DNA of 6,445 nt from Paramicrosporidium saccamoebae KSL3 (taxonomy: Eukaryota > Fungi > Cryptomycota), in NCBI GenBank assembly GCA_002794465.1, contig MTSL01000138.1:1-6445 (forward strand). The letters run 5' to 3'. This document shows positions 1 to 6,445 of the stretch, piece after piece (position 1 is the stretch's first letter; each line of letters starts with the position of its first letter). A program made the translations under genes and the position numbers. The notes under the pieces were generated by a model. It saw only the letters and a program-made list of their open reading frames with translations, did not search any database and was not told the origin of the DNA.

Positions 1-88
1 TAGATCAAGGTAGCATTATGAATTTAAACAAGGCAACCACTTTACATATTATGTGTGTGTTCTCTCTCGTCTATTAGCTAATCCGCCC

Positions 89-94
89 TTTATT
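89..94 (-). terminator. Candidate polyadenylation signal AATAAA overlapping the MGA2 stop codon
   Basis: Plus strand 89-94 is TTTATT, so the minus strand reads CAA TAA A. The hexamer contains the TAA stop. Confidence 0.45.
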
Positions 95-2336
95 GGACCA
101 GTATTTGGGACGTGTCTGTCCAGGAGGACACGGTGTGCACAACATTGGAGCCAAGATCAAAGTACCAGACGAGGACCACTGCAATGAGGATGGGAATCCA
201 GAAATACATAAAGAGGAAATCTCTAGATTTTTGCCTCACTGGCTGGGACTCGACAAAACTCTGGTACAGCCTGTCAGTGGCAGACTGGGTAATGGAGGCG
301 GTGCCAAAAGTGTCCAAGTAGTACTTTTTAACCGACTCTTCTGACGTCAGCTTTCTCCAAATGACATTCTTTAACCGGTTCATGTGATTTTTCATGCGGG
401 CCGGCCGCTTCCGTAGCCGCGTAGTGGCATCACTGAGCAGAGTCAGGAGGGAGGAGGGCTGCTTTTGCGAGCGCTCCCTCGCACGGCTTTGGATGAGACG
501 ATACCGCCAAAGAATGTCGGCGTCGTCACCGACGGGCTCTTCCTCGTCGCTGTCATCAAGACCAAGGGTCACTAGAAACTCGCGGCGTCCCGCAAGAAGA
601 TAATGGTCTATGGGAGTAAAGCCGTTATTATCCACCGACTCGAGAAGACGACCATTTCTCATGCCGGACAGATATTCAAACAAGTGGTCATAGTGACTCA
701 GGGCAGCCAGATGGAGCAGATTTTGACCACCCGCAGTCTGAACCTTCATGACGTCTTTTGCATCAAACCGCACTCCGCCGGTTCTTTCGGTGGCGGCCAG
801 ACAGGTGATGAGGACGCGCTGCAGATTGCCTGAGGACTGACTGCCGGATTGGGAGCCGGCACTGGTACCGGGGGAGAATTCGTTGATGATTCTCATGGCA
901 ATGTCGCAGGCGTCATCGACACGGCCGGTCATTTTCATCCCGATGAGCTGCAAAGCGAGCTCCATCATGGCACGGTCCAAGTCGTTTTTGTAGTTGAACA
1001 GGGCGTATTCGTCCACAGCAACGGATCCGGCAGTGATGACAGGGACCACTCCTGCGGTATGTGACGGGGGCAGTCTGACCACGACAGTGGATGTGCTGAT
1101 AAAGTTGACAATGGTAGCTGGGAATTGTCCAAACATGAGAATTACGTGTTCAGAAAGGTTTTCGCCCAGCACAGTCACTTCAATGCCGCCATACATGGGA
1201 CCCTCGGCGGGGATGACTTTGAGAATGCGCGGCTCTGCTTGACGGGGCGCAATAGGAATAATTGGTATAATGGGAGCAATAAGCTGCGTGGGAGTGATAA
1301 GCGGCGTGGGAGCAATAAGCGGTGTGGGAGCAATGGGCATAATGTGTGCAGAGTGTGCAGAGTGTGCAGAGTGTGTAGAGTGTGTAGAGTGTGTAATGTG
1401 TGGTTCTGACTTTGTCTGACGTACCACCCTTTTGTGGTCATCGGTAATGAGAATGGGAGGAGAATAGGCACAGCCAACCAGACGATGGTGACTGTTAAGC
1501 AGCTCCAGTTTTACACGGAAGCCAACTCGCTCGTCTACGTGGCGACAGTAGCAGGTGAGACGTATAGGCAACATGACATCGCCACGGAGAAGTTGGATTT
1601 GTTCGTTCTGACTGGCAAAAATGACGATGCGTTCGCGGTCTTGCTCCGTTTCCTTTTCCATTGCGTTGGACATGAAAGATTCGCCTTTGAAGCCTTCATC
1701 GTCTGACTTTACGCGTTTCCGAAATTCCTTTTTCCTTTCGCGGAGGATGCAAGAGTAGCAGGCATAGACGCGTTCGTCAGAGTCTGACTTGACCACGCGG
1801 GCACGGACAAAGAGCGTCTCCGTTCCCGTTTCGACCGGCGAGTCTCCGGCTGAGACGCTGCATCTCCGGGAAGCCAGCTGGTGTTTTGGCAGGACGAGCC
1901 ACTTGGCCGGAGACGTCCCGGCACGGGGAACGACGTGCAGAATCAACTTTACTTGGGTTTCGGTGCGGGAGCGGGCTCCACTTTCGGGGATTCCGAGGAT
2001 GCTTGCATCGTAGAGTCCGGCCTCTTCAACGGACGTGTCAAAATCCCCAATAGGGGTGTCGAAAAAGTCGCCAATACTGTCGATATAGCAGGACGCTATG
2101 GGGTGCTGTTCCATGTCGGTCATGGGCGGGGAAATGGTTGCTTCGCTGATGGACTGAACATGAGAAAAGAAAAGATTTTCTACCGATTCTGTAGAGGTGT
2201 CGCCGTAGGCCGCACCAAAGAGCGCAGTCCTCATTTGGAGAACCTGGGACTTTGAGTGCTCGCCCCCATTACCGCTGTCTTCCTGTTGCACGCGCTGAAA
2301 GGCGCCGAAAAGACCGCCTGGATCAATAAAACTCAT
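90..2336 (-). CDS. MGA2: SPT23/MGA2-family membrane-bound transcription factor (ER-anchored regulator of fatty-acid desaturase OLE1); 748 aa
   Basis: ATG at 2336-2334 with an in-frame TGA just upstream; TAA at 92-90. Family motifs appear in the expected order: CYSCILRERKK, RLTCYCRH (1539-1562), PILITDDHK (ITDDHK 1431-1448), IPT/TIG domain starting PRILKVIPAEGPMYGGIEVTVLGENL (about 990-1232), ankyrin repeats GQNLLHLAAL...DNNGFTPI (about 565-735) and C-terminal TM helix FLFMYFWIPILIAVVLVWYF (159-218). I cannot tell SPT23 from MGA2, which are budding-yeast paralogues. Confidence 0.93.
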   Translation of the reverse strand: MSFIDPGGLFGAFQRVQQEDSGNGGEHSKSQVLQMRTALFGAAYGDTSTESVENLFFSHVQSISEATISPPMTDMEQHPIASCYIDSIGDFFDTPIGDFDTSVEEAGLYDASILGIPESGARSRTETQVKLILHVVPRAGTSPAKWLVLPKHQLASRRCSVSAGDSPVETGTETLFVRARVVKSDSDERVYACYSCILRERKKEFRKRVKSDDEGFKGESFMSNAMEKETEQDRERIVIFASQNEQIQLLRGDVMLPIRLTCYCRHVDERVGFRVKLELLNSHHRLVGCAYSPPILITDDHKRVVRQTKSEPHITHSTHSTHSAHSAHSAHIMPIAPTPLIAPTPLITPTQLIAPIIPIIPIAPRQAEPRILKVIPAEGPMYGGIEVTVLGENLSEHVILMFGQFPATIVNFISTSTVVVRLPPSHTAGVVPVITAGSVAVDEYALFNYKNDLDRAMMELALQLIGMKMTGRVDDACDIAMRIINEFSPGTSAGSQSGSQSSGNLQRVLITCLAATERTGGVRFDAKDVMKVQTAGGQNLLHLAALSHYDHLFEYLSGMRNGRLLESVDNNGFTPIDHYLLAGRREFLVTLGLDDSDEEEPVGDDADILWRYRLIQSRARERSQKQPSSLLTLLSDATTRLRKRPARMKNHMNRLKNVIWRKLTSEESVKKYYLDTFGTASITQSATDRLYQSFVESQPVRQKSRDFLFMYFWIPILIAVVLVWYFDLGSNVVHTVSSWTDTSQILVQ
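1245..1334 (-). repeat. Coding tandem repeat: about 3.5 x 18 bp (IAPTPL) grading into 9-bp units (IAP/IIP)
   Basis: Plus-strand units tgggagcaataagctgcg (1271-1288), tgggagtgataagcggcg (1289-1306), tgggagcaataagcggtg (1307-1324) and tgggagcaat (1325-1334); 9-bp units gggcgcaat/aggaataat/tggtataat at 1245-1271. Together they encode IAPTPLIAPTPLITPTQLIAPIIPIIPIAP. Confidence 0.85.
1344..1402 (-). repeat. Coding 9-bp tandem repeat (about 6.5 copies) encoding H-S-[T/A] tripeptides
   Basis: Plus strand gtgtgcaga x3, gtgtgtaga x2, gtgtgtaat, gtgtg; encodes HITHSTHSTHSAHSAHSAH in the MGA2 frame. Confidence 0.92.
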
Positions 2337-2410
2337 TTCCAGTCAGTGTTCCTTGAATCCGGGTCTGGGCCTGGGGTGTTGGGGGCGCCTTCCACAATGC
2401 CTATGGACGG

Positions 2411-2415
2411 CCAAT
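2411..2415 (+). promoter_or_regulatory. CCAAT box (NF-Y/Hap2-3-5 type)
   Basis: GGCCAATAAG fits the RRCCAAT-x-RG flanking preference of CCAAT-binding complexes and lies inside the divergent intergenic region. A single pentamer can occur by chance. Confidence 0.35.
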
Positions 2416-2426
2416 AAGATTCTTAT

Positions 2427-2456
2427 GTGTGGTGTAGTGTAGTTTAGTGTGGTTTA
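2427..2456. repeat. Degenerate pentamer tandem repeat GT(G/T)T(G/A) x6
   Basis: gtgtg gtgta gtgta gttta gtgtg gttta, inside a 45-nt stretch with no C on the plus strand (2423-2467). Confidence 0.75.
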
Positions 2457-2552
2457 GTAGGTTGGATCTATTTGTAGAGGGGGTGCAGTTTTCGTGAGTA
2501 GACCCTTTTTGCTTAATCAATAAATGATACTGGATCATGTGCGGGTGTAGAA

Positions 2553-2831
2553 ATGAGCCTAGTTATCCAGGGCAGGCTTATGGCAGGCCGACCCAAGTTT
2601 TTGACTCGGATTTTGGACACGGCCCATCAGGCGACTGTTATATTCTTGCTTGGTTCCAGCGTTGCTTTGTTGGGGGCCATTGGAGCAAACATGTACAACC
2701 GGAGGAGCTTGCGCTTGGAGAAGCTGCGTGAGGCGCAAGCAGCGGGGTATGATTTGCATGGGACCGAGGGTAGTGTTAGCGGTAGCGGTAGTGGTAGTGG
2801 TGTGTATGAAGCTAAGCGCAATATAGATTAG
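2553..2831 (+). CDS. COX14: Cytochrome c oxidase (complex IV) assembly factor Cox14-like single-TM protein; true start may be ATG 2580 (83 aa)
   Basis: FLTRILDTAHQATVIFLLGSSVALLGAIGANMY aligns with yeast Cox14 as I recall it ([33 protein letters not shown]), sharing TR-x(1,2)-DT-x-H-x-x-TV-x-x-L-x-G, then one hydrophobic helix and a charged tail. Size fits the family. ATG 2580 gives a yeast-like N-terminal length. Confidence 0.8.
   Translation: MSLVIQGRLMAGRPKFLTRILDTAHQATVIFLLGSSVALLGAIGANMYNRRSLRLEKLREAQAAGYDLHGTEGSVSGSGSGSGVYEAKRNID
2778..2801 (+). repeat. Coding 6-bp repeat x4 encoding SGSGSGSG in the Cox14 tail
   Basis: agcggt agcggt agtggt agtggt. Confidence 0.85.
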
Positions 2832-2921
2832 ACAACACACGCCGTGTATAGGAAATGTTCGCGTCATAAAGGATTCATTTTACGAGTTACATGCATCTAT
2901 TTTGATGACTAGGGATTGGTC

Positions 2922-5900
2922 ATGTCTACGAGGTTTCTTGTGGACCACTTGAATGCTCCCCTTGGTGCTGCACTTGGTCACAAGCAGGAATTGCTAAAGA
3001 GCGTCCAGTTGAGCAGCGATGGACACTTTTTGACTGTACATTCATCCACAAGTCCAGCCATTGTTTTGCATACTCTCAGCAGTTCCTGTCTGAAGAGAAG
3101 GTGGAATTTTCGTGCGGCTAGAATCAAGGCCTTTAGACCGGTGCTCTTGTGCAAAGAGTCTACAGAATCTGCGGTTATAATTTATGACGGGAGGCATTTT
3201 TCTCTATGGTTCCCTGAACGCAATGATATTGAGCACTTGCCGCTCAAAGTCGAAGAGAATGTCGTCGACATGAGGGTTTGCTGTTTCTCCTGGTGTGATG
3301 ATGACGGAAACCAGAAATTTGTCCAGGTCCTGGTGGTGGTTACAGAATGCGGACTTGTCTATGCTCTTCCATTGACTTTTGGTCAGGACAGCGAAGCAGT
3401 CGCGTGTCTGCGGATTAGACTCCCCATGAGCGACATTTGCCATGTGCAATTCCACCGTGATTCCAGCGACATGATTCTCATGGGCATTTCAAATCCGGAT
3501 ACTTTTATAATGGCCGAGCTGCCATCAGACTGTTCCCTGAATATTCTTGCCACCATTCCTCTTGAAACTAATGTTATCAATGTACACGTTTTGGCAAAGC
3601 TGGACTCTGGAATTTATCAAATTTGCCGTGTACAGAAGGATGGCTGGATTGATTCAGAGTATCACGTCGAAGAAAAGACATTTAAAGCGTCCAGGTCTAT
3701 TCATCCTGAGACTGCTGACATGGTCTGGAAGGAATCGTCAATTTATCATGGGTGGAACGATCCGATATTGCTTTGCAGGACTAAAGGGCTCTATGTGGCA
3801 TTCAATGCAATTAATGGGACCGAAGTGTTTCGTGAACCAGCGTCAAAGACTGAGGAAATTTACGACTTGTTTATAGATTCCACCCTGCGAGTGTTTCTTT
3901 TGTCGGCTGCTGGCGTAAAATGCATTGATTCAGCAAGCTCTTCTCTGACGTGGCTGCTTTCACTGCCTCGCCAGAAGGAATTTGACTTTTTGGTAGCATT
4001 TGACATTATGCTGCCGTTCCCATTCGACGGAGTATTCACAAACGGCCTGCCGCCACTATTAACTAAACTCTGGACGCTTGTGTCAAACGAGCCTCTGACC
4101 TATCCATTTAAATCGTGGCAGCATCTGCGCAGCATCCTGGACACGATCAATCTTTCCGATTGCGACGTGGAGATTCGACGGATTGTCATTATGTATTTGA
4201 TTTCTCTTGGACAGCCTGGCCGGCTGCACCCCTTCATTCTGCACTATGGCATCAGTGTGGCCGAAGCCATTGAAGCCCAAGCGTATGTAGCGATCGATAT
4301 TGGAGACGCCGAGAGAGCAAAGTATTTATTATCTTTTGTCTCTTTGACACTCTTGCTACAAGACGATATTGACGGTGAATTCCTGTCAGTCCCAAATCTC
4401 GACTCTTTGTCCTGGGGGCAGAGGATCGATGCATTCCTTGAGACGGCTTTGGAGCTTGAAGCCGTCCGAGTTGCAGCTGAATGCACCCCAAGTGCCCGCC
4501 ATGAAATCTTGATCCATTTAATCAGCAAAGCCTCGTCTAATGCAGACTTGTTCAAAGCGCTCTGCACAGCAAGTGGCTTTGATGGTGCCTGTGATGAAAT
4601 GTATGATTTTGCGGTGAACGGCCAGTTGGAAGCGATCAATGAACTTGCCAGAATACTTGTACAAAGGCGGAGATACAAACAAGCGGAGGAGCTTTTAAAG
4701 ATTTCGTCCCAGAATTACGCTGCAGAGATGATGGAGGTTTTTGACACTCTGTGTCCGTCGTATTCTCCGTCTATTGATCTTGTGGAGAATATTTCAGTTT
4801 CGCCAATGGACTGCGATAACAGCCACTTTGACTTTGACTGTCCGGTGGTTGTTCGAAAAAAGCCTGCGACTGTACACGCGTCTTTGGGAACGCCCTCGAC
4901 AGTGCTCATTTCGCGAGCAAGGCCACCTCTTTCTGTCGCCCATCATCCTAAACTGCCCAGCCGACTAGTAAATCTTGTTCAAGCTTCCGACACGTCGCCA
5001 TTTGACACTCCACTCCGATCGAGATTGCCGACGGACGACATGGAGCTGCGGAGCCGATCCATACCATCAAGTCCCAAGAGGTCAGTGTCGCCAAGCTCGC
5101 GAAACACTAAAAGAGCAGTATCACCCAGCCCAAGAAACTTGCAAGGAAACAAACGGTCAATGTCCACGAGTCCGAAAAATGCGAGGAGCCTGGGAAATTT
5201 GAAGAATTCGAAGAGCTTGGGGAGTCGTTCGCGTTCAAGATCGCATAGCCCAGTTAGAGAGGATGCCGATAAAATGGAAAAGACGGCACACTTGTCCAGT
5301 CCTCGGCGCTCTGAACGGATATCGGCCAATACTCCTAGGAAGACGCCTGAGATGCCAGTGGAAATGCCGGTGGAAATGCCGGTGGAAAGGCCGACTGAGG
5401 TGCCGGTGGAGGTGCCGACTGAGGTGCCAATAGAAACACCTGTGAAATCGCCGATGAAGACGCCCGCAAAAACACCTGTGAAATCGCCGATGAAGACGCC
5501 CGCAAAAACACCTGTGAAATCACCGATGAAGACGCCCGCAAAAACACCTGTGAAATCACAGATGAAGACGTCCACAAAAACACCTGTGAAATCACCGATG
5601 AAGACGCCCGCAAAAACACCTGCGAAAACGCCTGCAAAGTCACACACAAAAACACCTGCAAGGTCACCCAAAAAGACGCCCGCGAAAACACCTGTAAAGT
5701 CGCCTGAAAAAGCACCCAAAGAAACACCCGCAACAACACTCACAAAAACACCTGTAAAGTCACCTAAGAAATCGCCAACAAAAAAGCACCCAAGGACGCC
5801 AGCCACTCGAGAGAAACAAACCCCCATAGAGTCTCCCATCTCCAGTCCACGATCAAGCCCTAAATTAGATGTTGCTCCTCAGAACATTACTGTTAGGAAG

Positions 5901-6161
5901 AAGCGGAGGAGACGCAGTAGAAATCCCACTTCAGAAGCTGTTGACAATGCCCAGCCTACGGGTCATTTTTTACGATCGCCCAGTGTCAAAGACTCGGTTC
6001 CTCCAAAACCTTCACATGTACGCACATCTCCGCGGAAGAGGCAATCTCCAGATACCGGTACAATTGGAGCGGATGGGATCTCTAAGCCCAGGAAGAAAAA
6101 CAAGGCGGTTCCTGAACAAATGGTACGCAAAGTGCCACTGACTAAAAAGTCGAAAAAATAA
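2922..6161 (+). CDS. ELYS: ELYS/AHCTF1/MEL-28-like nucleoporin (beta-propeller-like N-terminus + ELYS helical domain + basic disordered S/TPxK tail); 1079 aa
   Basis: The first ATG is 2922 (the track start at 2916 is TTG); TAA at 6159-6161. Three collinear matches to human ELYS as remembered: VLVVVTECGLVYALPL (3327-3374) vs VAAVVTDVGQILLVDL in the propeller; YPFKSWQHLRSILD...IVIMYLI...FILHYGIS...QAYVAIDIGDAERAKYLL (4101-4331) vs YPPASLHAVLD...ITIYLL...FPTVFAIS...QGFWLIDHNDYESGLDLL; and QRRRYKQAEEL (4662-4694) vs QRANYVPALKL. The last roughly 400 aa are S/P/K/R/T-rich and low complexity. Confidence 0.72.
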   Translation: MSTRFLVDHLNAPLGAALGHKQELLKSVQLSSDGHFLTVHSSTSPAIVLHTLSSSCLKRRWNFRAARIKAFRPVLLCKESTESAVIIYDGRHFSLWFPERNDIEHLPLKVEENVVDMRVCCFSWCDDDGNQKFVQVLVVVTECGLVYALPLTFGQDSEAVACLRIRLPMSDICHVQFHRDSSDMILMGISNPDTFIMAELPSDCSLNILATIPLETNVINVHVLAKLDSGIYQICRVQKDGWIDSEYHVEEKTFKASRSIHPETADMVWKESSIYHGWNDPILLCRTKGLYVAFNAINGTEVFREPASKTEEIYDLFIDSTLRVFLLSAAGVKCIDSASSSLTWLLSLPRQKEFDFLVAFDIMLPFPFDGVFTNGLPPLLTKLWTLVSNEPLTYPFKSWQHLRSILDTINLSDCDVEIRRIVIMYLISLGQPGRLHPFILHYGISVAEAIEAQAYVAIDIGDAERAKYLLSFVSLTLLLQDDIDGEFLSVPNLDSLSWGQRIDAFLETALELEAVRVAAECTPSARHEILIHLISKASSNADLFKALCTASGFDGACDEMYDFAVNGQLEAINELARILVQRRRYKQAEELLKISSQNYAAEMMEVFDTLCPSYSPSIDLVENISVSPMDCDNSHFDFDCPVVVRKKPATVHASLGTPSTVLISRARPPLSVAHHPKLPSRLVNLVQASDTSPFDTPLRSRLPTDDMELRSRSIPSSPKRSVSPSSRNTKRAVSPSPRNLQGNKRSMSTSPKNARSLGNLKNSKSLGSRSRSRSHSPVREDADKMEKTAHLSSPRRSERISANTPRKTPEMPVEMPVEMPVERPTEVPVEVPTEVPIETPVKSPMKTPAKTPVKSPMKTPAKTPVKSPMKTPAKTPVKSQMKTSTKTPVKSPMKTPAKTPAKTPAKSHTKTPARSPKKTPAKTPVKSPEKAPKETPATTLTKTPVKSPKKSPTKKHPRTPATREKQTPIESPISSPRSSPKLDVAPQNITVRKKRRRRSRNPTSEAVDNAQPTGHFLRSPSVKDSVPPKPSHVRTSPRKRQSPDTGTIGADGISKPRKKNKAVPEQMVRKVPLTKKSKK
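5352..5807 (+). repeat. Coding minisatellite: 38 in-phase 12-bp units (7 acidic xPxE, then 31 mostly S/T-P-x-K), including five 36-bp higher-order units at 5436-5615
   Basis: 456 bp = 38 x 12. The 36-bp unit acacctgtgaaatc(g/a)ccgatgaagacgcccgcaaaa occurs at 5436, 5472 (identical to the first), 5508, 5544 (diverged, TPVKSQMKTSTK) and 5580, encoding TPVKSPMKTPAK. Confidence 0.95.
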
Positions 6162-6162
6162 A
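6157..6162 (+). terminator. Candidate polyadenylation signal AATAAA overlapping the ELYS-like stop codon
   Basis: AAA AAA TAA A: the hexamer at 6157-6162 contains the stop. A variant ATTAAA lies at 6188-6193. Confidence 0.45.
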
Positions 6163-6206
6163 CGGATAAACGGATGTGAGCGAGTATATTAAACCATAAT
6201 CATAAT

Positions 6207-6213
6207 TATAAAT
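6207..6213 (+). promoter_or_regulatory. TATA-like element (TATAAAT) upstream of the probable downstream gene
   Basis: TATAAAT in an AT-rich intergenic patch, 33 bp before ATG 6240. Depends on that ORF being real. Confidence 0.35.
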
Positions 6214-6239
6214 GCGGAGCAGGAATAACGGGCATTACT

Positions 6240-6445
6240 ATGGTTTCTGGACATTTTCCCCAGGGTGGCACTGTTATGGATTCAAATAACAGCCGACACG
6301 ACTCGAGTCGGCCGCCGGTCCGGGACAAGTGGCTCCAGATAATTTTAAACCCCGCCGACGAAGACCGACCCACAAGAGGAACTGTGTCTGATTCAAGCAC
6401 AATCGCCTCGCCCACAGAGTCCAAACTGTCGACAATGTCGACAAT
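6240..6445 (+). CDS. Probable 5'-partial gene of unknown product (MVSGHFPQGGTVMDSNNSRHDSSRPPVRDKWLQIILNPADEDRPTRGTVSDSSTIASPTESKLSTMST...), runs off the window
   Basis: Open with no stop from ATG 6240 (first ATG after TGA 6177) to the window edge, with an alternative ATG at 6276. It is preceded by TATAAAT and by GGG-N7-ATG, and reads like an S/T-rich disordered N-terminus. No family recognised. Confidence 0.45.
   Translation, partial: MVSGHFPQGGTVMDSNNSRHDSSRPPVRDKWLQIILNPADEDRPTRGTVSDSSTIASPTESKLSTMST

Follow-up and report, generated by a model that had tools for sequence, protein, structure and literature searches.

What would a protein gain from 23 consensus phosphorylation sites for cyclin-dependent kinase (CDK) packed into one array, how did the array arise, and in what kind of protein does it lie? 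These questions are raised by a stretch of 6,445 nucleotides from Paramicrosporidium saccamoebae KSL3 (assembly GCA_002794465.1, contig MTSL01000138.1, positions 1 to 6,445 of the forward strand), referred to below as the window. The genome record, MTSL00000000, is that of a rozellomycotan which lives as an intranuclear parasite of amoebae (PMC5701793). Three genes are present in the window: an SPT23/MGA2-type gene, a COX14-like gene and the gene carrying the array, whose 1079-amino acid product (2922-6161, plus strand) is identical to the one called on the NCBI contig. The array is an in-frame coding minisatellite whose 12-residue unit is itself built of 4-residue units (36 and 12 nucleotides). 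It lies in the tail of a nuclear propeller-plus-helical protein, most likely the ELYS-type nucleoporin of P. saccamoebae. The explanation preferred here, at a little short of an even chance, is that the array arose by amplification, in this species only, of a polybasic module which the whole family has and which proline-directed kinases control; the module would work as a charge switch on chromatin or DNA. The protein is laid out as follows.

Positions 2922 to 6161, plus strand: intronless gene for a 1079-amino acid protein made of a propeller, a helical domain and a basic disordered tail (stop codon at 6159-6161).
Positions 2922 to 3926, plus strand: predicted beta-propeller of about seven blades, amino acids 1-335 (AlphaFold2, all beta, predicted local distance difference test score, pLDDT, of 80-95 over most of it).
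Positions 4053 to 4751, plus strand: alpha-helical domain, amino acids ~378-610, with an ELYS-like core at amino acids 388-483 (nucleotides 4083-4370).
Positions 4842 to 6158, plus strand: disordered basic C-terminal tail of about 440 residues, amino acids 641-1079 (composition, charge and charge-hydropathy plot).

The structural model was built with AlphaFold2 on an alignment of 11 family sequences (mean pLDDT 69.7), the model from the single sequence being unusable (pLDDT 39.6); helices were modelled from about amino acid 378 and were confident (pLDDT ~75-90) up to about amino acid 470. The tail is rich in Ser, Pro, Lys, Arg and Thr, carries a net charge of +68 and 43 SP/TP dipeptides, and falls in the disordered field of the charge-hydropathy plot.

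The sequence-only reading had counted 23 full CDK sites, [ST]P.[KR], among 31 consecutive tetrapeptides at 5436-5807, and this count was exact on the frame-0 translation, which is in frame with 2922-6161: TPVK (seven), SPMK (four), TPAK (seven), TPAR, SPKK (two), SPEK and SPTK. The roughly six further sites that it placed elsewhere in the tail were exactly six (TPLR at 5007, SPKR at 5070, SPVR at 5247, SPRR at 5298, TPRK at 5331 and SPRK at 6027). The C-terminal 411 residues therefore hold 29 full sites vs. 3.6 expected (2000 composition-preserving shuffles, p<0.0005); none was found in the 668 residues of the structured N-terminal part, and the other open reading frames (ORFs) of the 11.8-kb contig have 0-1. 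This is a cluster of full-consensus sites in a disordered region, as in multisite CDK substrates. Three blocks make up the repetitive part of the tail.

Positions 5352 to 5435, plus strand: acidic xPxE repeat (MPVE three times, RPTE, VPVE, VPTE, VPIE), for which Tandem Repeats Finder gave periods of 12 and 24 at 5347-5428.
Positions 5436 to 5615, plus strand: core of the array, made up of five young 36-bp units (pairwise unit identity, Tandem Repeats Finder).
Positions 5616 to 5807, plus strand: remainder of the array, with the older and diverged units 6-10 (pairwise unit identity, codon listing).

Tandem Repeats Finder reported a 36-bp unit (TPVKSPMKTPAK) in 7.3 copies with 85% matches at 5434-5695, together with periods of 12, 24 and 72 bp. 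The three tetrapeptides of the 12-residue unit are written with different synonymous codons (ACA CCT GTG AAA, TCG CCG ATG AAG and ACG CCC GCA AAA), and therefore an old 4-residue periodicity was re-amplified as a 12-residue block. Units 1, 2, 3 and 5 are 97-100% identical among themselves at the DNA level and contribute 12 full sites; unit 4 is 88-91% identical to them and keeps only one full site, two prolines having been lost (SQMK, TSTK); units 6-10 are 52-77% identical among themselves and to the young units, and 10 of their 15 tetrapeptides are full sites. The acidic block lies directly upstream in the same 4-residue phase (7 units, net charge -6), and the succession of acidic xPxE and basic [ST]PxK repeats recalls nucleolin.

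The older units bear on whether the motif itself has mattered. When units 6-10 were compared with the consensus of the young units at codon positions 1 and 2, the S/T, P and K codons (18 sites in each unit) showed 13 changes and the x codon (6 sites in each unit) showed 17, so that the motif codons had changed about 4-fold less per site (binomial p=2e-4). In the older part of the array the motif positions were thus constrained.

Relatives of the protein were sought with HMMER through the whole of a set of 1.84 billion representatives; ten genuine relatives were obtained, all of them in environmental or SRA assemblies. Three are full length (P0004, 991 amino acids; P0006, 1069; P0008, 798), and the rest are partial: P0011, a C-terminal half, and six N-terminal fragments. 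An eleventh match, P0009, was a spurious repeat protein and was discarded. Comparisons of tails and helical domains were made on five family members: the window protein, P0004, P0006, P0008 and P0011. Gene order supports the orthology of P0004, P0006 and P0011 with the window gene. P0004 (locus L002) and P0006 (locus L003) have a convergent GRASP55 gene downstream, as has the window gene, and on a 46-kb SRA contig of an uncultured relative (locus L005, the source of P0011) the order is SPT23/MGA2 (minus), COX14 (plus), ELYS-like (plus) and GRASP55 (minus), the order SPT23/MGA2-COX14-ELYS-like-GRASP55 being common to this relative and P. saccamoebae. The ELYS-like gene at L005 is split into models of 361 and 541 amino acids, of which the former matches the N-terminus of the window protein (E 7e-21); the split could be due to an intron, to a frameshift or to an erroneous model. 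The gene downstream of P0008 was without Pfam annotation.

The comparison of orthologous tails, proposed in the sequence-only reading as a check, showed that enrichment in full CDK sites is conserved. The relatives' tails contain 8 (P0004), 12 (P0006), 7 (P0008) and 7 (P0011) full sites, whereas shuffling predicts 0.8-1.8 (p<0.0005 each), and the window tail without its array still holds 6 vs. 1.7 expected (p=0.0045). No tandem array was found in the tails of P0004, P0006, P0008 or P0011; P0004 has a small cluster of three SPKK at the position aligned with the array. Since all five tails are enriched, the site cluster is ancestral to the family and the array an amplification specific to P. saccamoebae. 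Given the conserved, dense CDK sites and the constrained motif positions, phospho-regulation of the tail is a reasonable supposition.

The same comparison bears on the proposal that the array had replaced the AT-hook used by vertebrate ELYS. The hook is indeed missing, neither GRP nor RGRP occurring anywhere in the 1079 residues. The window protein therefore lacks the RGRP core of animal ELYS, and four of the five family members are without any GRP. The exception is P0006, a GC-rich orthologue whose C-terminus, TPRSGRPRRALDGDSPPPGVTLRRGRPS (L003, 3255-3347, up to the stop codon), contains two AT-hook-like GRP cores, RSGRPRR and RRGRPS (p ~0.07 for RGRP by shuffling); the C-terminus of P0004 (L002, 3540-3567) reads PPTVNTRRG. 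The replacement itself was not supported: all five members, P0006 with its AT-hook-like ending included, have the CDK-site cluster, and the tandem array is confined to P. saccamoebae and is largely a very recent duplication. Because cluster and AT-hook-like ending coexist in P0006, the array would be an amplification and not a swap for a lost AT-hook.

The label "H1/SPKK-like" was likewise not supported. A Pfam scan of the full protein found no Linker_histone globular domain, the sole match being the weak one to ELYS. The composition of the array (K 24%, P 22%, T 20%, A 9%) is unlike that of H1 tails, which are richer in Lys and Ala and more charge-dense. Of the 23 array sites only two, both SPKK, fit the strict S/T-P-[KR]-[KR] form, with six in the whole tail, and V, M, A, T or E fills the x position of the other 21. 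The strict form is the one by which the SPKK DNA-binding motif is defined (PMC9903204).

Is the host protein ELYS? The Pfam ELYS family (PF13934, cutoff 28.8 bits) matched the full-length window protein at 19 bits (E 0.0014) and its helical domain alone at 23.1 bits (E 7.5e-5). The helical domains of P0004 (20.7 bits, E 4e-4), P0008 (12.8 bits, E 0.11) and P0011 (12.8 bits, E 0.11) were also matched, and that of P0006 was not; a BLOSUM consensus of the five helical domains reached 26.7 bits (E 5.9e-6). PF13934 was the only Pfam family matched, in four of the five members, always at about positions 18-125 of the 220 of the profile. The single family, the fixed profile region and the rise in score with the consensus indicate genuine remote homology of the helical domain to ELYS, and the 1079-amino acid protein is probably an ELYS-type nucleoporin. 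The term "ELYS-like" of the sequence-only reading accordingly stood in part: the sole Pfam match is to ELYS and the tail is disordered and strongly basic with a conserved cluster resembling a nuclear localisation signal (NLS), but the scores remain below the cutoff. The cluster in question is the following.

Positions 5895 to 5921, plus strand: NLS-like basic cluster RKKRRRRSR, amino acids 992-1000, with a conserved TV ahead of it (regular-expression scan).

Its counterparts in the relatives are TVTTRRKKKRNKK in P0008 and VTVRRRRKG in P0011. Described fungal ELYS proteins consist of the helical domain only, about 300 amino acids (PMC6371224, PMC4920428); if the assignment is right, a long, metazoan-style form exists in a clade of the fungal lineage.

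Several findings weigh against a charge switch in an ELYS-type tail. As regards the host, every PF13934 score is below 28.8 bits; the Pfam propeller family of ELYS, ELYS-bb (PF16687), was unmatched by the propeller of any member or by the family consensus; the top 50 Foldseek matches of the propeller model were generic propellers, with no ELYS among them; and neither profile nor single-sequence searches of PDB chains gave ELYS or Ely5 above noise. It is thus conceivable, though unlikely, that the protein is of a different kind, a nuclear protein combining a propeller, helical repeats and a basic tail, in which case a pore-chromatin tether would be moot; this possibility is independent of the other rivals considered here. 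Against it stand the matches to ELYS, and to no other family, over the same profile region in four of five divergent members, with the consensus score of 26.7 bits (E 5.9e-6), the three-part architecture, which is that of metazoan ELYS (PMC6371224), and the RRGRPS ending of P0006.

As regards the array, four nearly identical copies of the 36-bp unit supply 12 of the 23 sites. The sites are therefore not independent events, and much of the density goes back to a single recent slippage event. Two prolines have already been lost in unit 4, and individual sites are therefore dispensable. Only the two SPKK sites have the strict minor-groove SP[KR][KR] form, and neither cyclin-docking RxL/LxF motifs nor a PP1-docking RVxF motif were found in the window tail. 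Coding micro- or minisatellites also occur in both adjoining genes (1271-1402 and 2769-2801), and slippage looks common in the P. saccamoebae genome. These observations feed the strongest rival, somewhat unlikely in itself: neutral low-complexity expansion, in which slippage inflated a pre-existing SP/TP-K patch and added length and charge but no switch function. The near identity of units 1, 2, 3 and 5 beside the two motif-breaking changes of unit 4, the lack of a tandem array in any orthologue and the repeats next door are all as this rival would have them; so is the period-4 xPxx pattern, a common low-complexity class that gave compositional matches to unrelated proteins. Two results argue against pure drift, namely the enrichment of tails in CDK sites across the family and the low rate of change in motif codons: 10 of the 15 motifs survive in the older units although their DNA identity is only 52-77%, and the motif codons show the 4-fold deficit of changes described above.

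If the amplified module does work as a charge switch, its arithmetic is simple. With 32 K/R and 2 D/E, the net charge of the array is +30, which 23 phosphates would bring to about -4.5 to -16. Unphosphorylated, the array (~+30) and the tail as a whole (+68) would act as a non-specific polycation and keep the protein attached to chromatin or DNA, which are polyanionic; once a CDK had phosphorylated many of the sites, the charge of the array would be neutralised or inverted and the protein released. Closely spaced TP sites set among basic residues approximate the preference of PP2A-B55, and a fast reversal upon CDK inactivation is conceivable. PP2A-B55 favours phosphothreonine CDK sites with basic flanks, and the timing of human ELYS recruitment is B55-independent (PMC5004449). 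The kinase, the phosphorylation, the chromatin or DNA ligand and the membership of the nuclear pore complex are all inferences.

Microsporidian relatives divide by closed mitosis. Were the same true of P. saccamoebae, seeding of pores after mitosis would be unnecessary and such a role would therefore not apply, release for segregation being the more apt function. A bolder version of the charge-switch explanation, clearly unlikely as it stands, is that Rozellomycota keep a metazoan-style long ELYS whose tail has become, in P. saccamoebae, an ultrasensitive 23-site CDK charge switch for pore-chromatin coupling in a probable closed mitosis.

The ligand of a phosphorylated module might also lie elsewhere than on chromatin. 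A phospho-module acting on nuclear import or retention, or on other polyanions (tubulin tails, RNA), is quite improbable; it would fit the conserved NLS-like cluster about 30 residues downstream of the array, the resemblance of the acidic block and basic TPxK repeats to the nucleolin N-terminus, where CDK1 affects localisation (PMC9064852), and the association of MEL-28/ELYS with spindle and kinetochores (PMC4920428), yet tails of the ELYS type are documented chromatin binders (PMC4920428). Another possibility, and a very improbable one, is an entropic spacer or brush without ligand, a proline-rich, polyproline-II-like rod whose extension would be tuned by phosphorylation, for which the KSP repeats of neurofilaments offer an analogue. 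Proline does recur every fourth residue through 38 units, from acidic xPxE into basic [ST]PxK, and the tail has 25 K/R-[ST]-P triplets, but what is shared across the family is scattered sites and not a rod-like repeat.

Apart from the array, two motifs were common to the family tails: the TV-R[KR]n NLS-like cluster and a short linear motif at the start of the tail.

Positions 4941 to 5000, plus strand: conserved short linear motif HHPKLPSRLVNLVQASDTSP, amino acids 674-693 (alignment with four relatives).

This motif aligns with RHHPKLPSRLAEQVRVIDTPSP (P0004), RHHPRAPSRLAEQVRIVDTPSP (P0006), VHQPKAPSRLAEQVQMSDAS (P0011) and SSRLAAEIKFSQTPS (P0008), giving the family pattern HHPK[LA]PSRL[AV]EQV..D[TA][ST]P, which is much better conserved than the remainder of the tail and could be a docking site. 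An RS-type run, GSRSRSRSHSPVR, at 5220-5250 (amino acids 767-776), upstream of the array, resembles an SR-kinase target patch. In two relatives an RVxF-like motif of the PP1-docking type, with SP ahead of it and acidic residues after it, occurs at aligned positions (P0006 amino acid 688, SPRKTVSF; P0004 amino acid 715, PPRRSLSF); the window protein reads SPRNLQG there and lacks the motif. ELYS has been reported to interact with PP1 (PMC11094025).

Other searches and candidates were set aside. Word-indexed homologue searches with amino acids 1-660 and with the family alignment returned no matches, nor did metagenome scans with the protein and with the back-translated tail motif. The array alone, in a word-indexed search, gave seven compositional matches, such as bacterial winged helix-turn-helix proteins with KTPAK tails and a hypothetical protein of Phytophthora, with no H1 or ELYS among them; PDB matches to the tail (Toxoplasma FLM1, the tail of ribosomal protein L4, an ARID-domain protein) reflected period-4 proline low complexity and not homology. 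Two antisense ORFs over the array (4979-5839, 286 amino acids, and 5335-5739, 134 amino acids, both on the minus strand, with GVFAGVF repeats) were taken as by-products of a stop-free repeat and rejected because the plus frame runs continuously with the conserved domains. The idea of an effector secreted into the host nucleus, suggested by the intranuclear habit of the parasite, was set aside because the protein belongs to a conserved, syntenic family of the housekeeping type; its N-terminus, MSTRFLVDHLNAPLG, inspected by eye and without a predictor, has no obvious hydrophobic leader.

The two neighbouring genes were annotated as follows.

Positions 90 to 2336, minus strand: SPT23/MGA2-type transcription factor gene (Pfam SPT23_MGA2_DBD, E 1.4e-36, and a TIG domain).
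Positions 2553 or 2580 to 2831, plus strand: COX14-like small ORF (weak COX14 match, E 0.0012).

The SPT23/MGA2-like gene contains coding tandem repeats at 1271-1402 (an 18-bp unit encoding LIAPTP and a 9-bp unit encoding HS[TA]), and its product terminates in a hydrophobic stretch, FLFMYFWIPILIAVVLVWYF, in keeping with anchoring in a membrane, as for factors of the Spt23/Mga2 type. The COX14-like ORF contains a GSGSGSGSG repeat at 2769-2801; it probably encodes a real cytochrome oxidase assembly factor, because its syntenic counterpart at L005 (1404-1640) has a recorded Pfam COX14 match.

If the protein is truly ELYS, early-diverging relatives of the fungi keep a three-part architecture so far described for animals, and the propeller and the tail would be a loss in Dikarya and not a gain in animals. 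As a multisite CDK charge switch, the array would moreover be an unusually clean model supplied by nature, with 23 near-identical sites and little else, and could help to test how the number and spacing of sites affect the sharpness of a switch. If it is only slippage, it is a routine low-complexity expansion and a caution that counts of consensus sites in tandem repeats overstate the evidence.

Among known systems, metazoan ELYS/MEL-28 (AHCTF1) has a comparable layout: its beta-propeller is N-terminal, a short helical ELYS domain follows, and the long tail is disordered and basic and contains NLSs (PMC6371224). It has over 150 phosphosites, and its mitotic form is hyperphosphorylated, heavily so in the tail (PMC11094025); it is on chromatin in interphase but not at metaphase (PMC4920428). 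The P. saccamoebae protein differs in being half the size, in having only a helical domain weakly similar in sequence, in lacking an AT-hook and in having its CDK sites in a tandem array and not scattered. With the short ELYS of Schizosaccharomyces pombe (Ely5) and Chaetomium thermophilum (~300 amino acids) it shares a host of the fungal lineage and candidate membership of PF13934; unlike these, the members of its family have in addition a propeller and a tail about 200-450 amino acids long, the metazoan type of layout.

The tail of H1 and the SPKK repeats of sea-urchin and hydrozoan sperm histones resemble the array in their repeated S/T-P-x-K within a basic disordered segment, and phosphorylation of serine in SPKK motifs inhibits DNA binding (PMC9903204); the window protein differs from them by the absence of a linker-histone globular domain, by SP[KR][KR] in only 2 of 23 sites and by a Thr/Pro-rich array. 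Nucleolin, whose N-terminus has eight [ST]PxK[KA] motifs, CDK1 targets affecting localisation, beside acidic stretches (PMC9064852), is matched by the acidic xPxE block directly before basic TPxK repeats. The proteins are not homologous. RRM and GAR domains are absent from the window protein, its acidic block is short (7 units) and its sites mostly carry one basic residue and not KK. In Saccharomyces cerevisiae, a fungus with closed mitosis, phosphorylation of the nuclear-face nucleoporin Nup1 by Cdk1 gates gene-pore association through the cell cycle and controls the tethering of chromatin to the pore (PMC2947477). Nup1 is, however, an unrelated FG (phenylalanine-glycine) nucleoporin, and the regulation is reported to act via phosphorylation of that single protein and not through a 23-site array (PMC2947477). 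The kinds to which the array belongs are thus known ones, either the CDK-site-rich disordered tail of a chromatin-facing nucleoporin or a phospho-regulated basic region like those of H1 and nucleolin; it exaggerates a feature common to its relatives, and is a plausible charge switch rather than a new kind of system.

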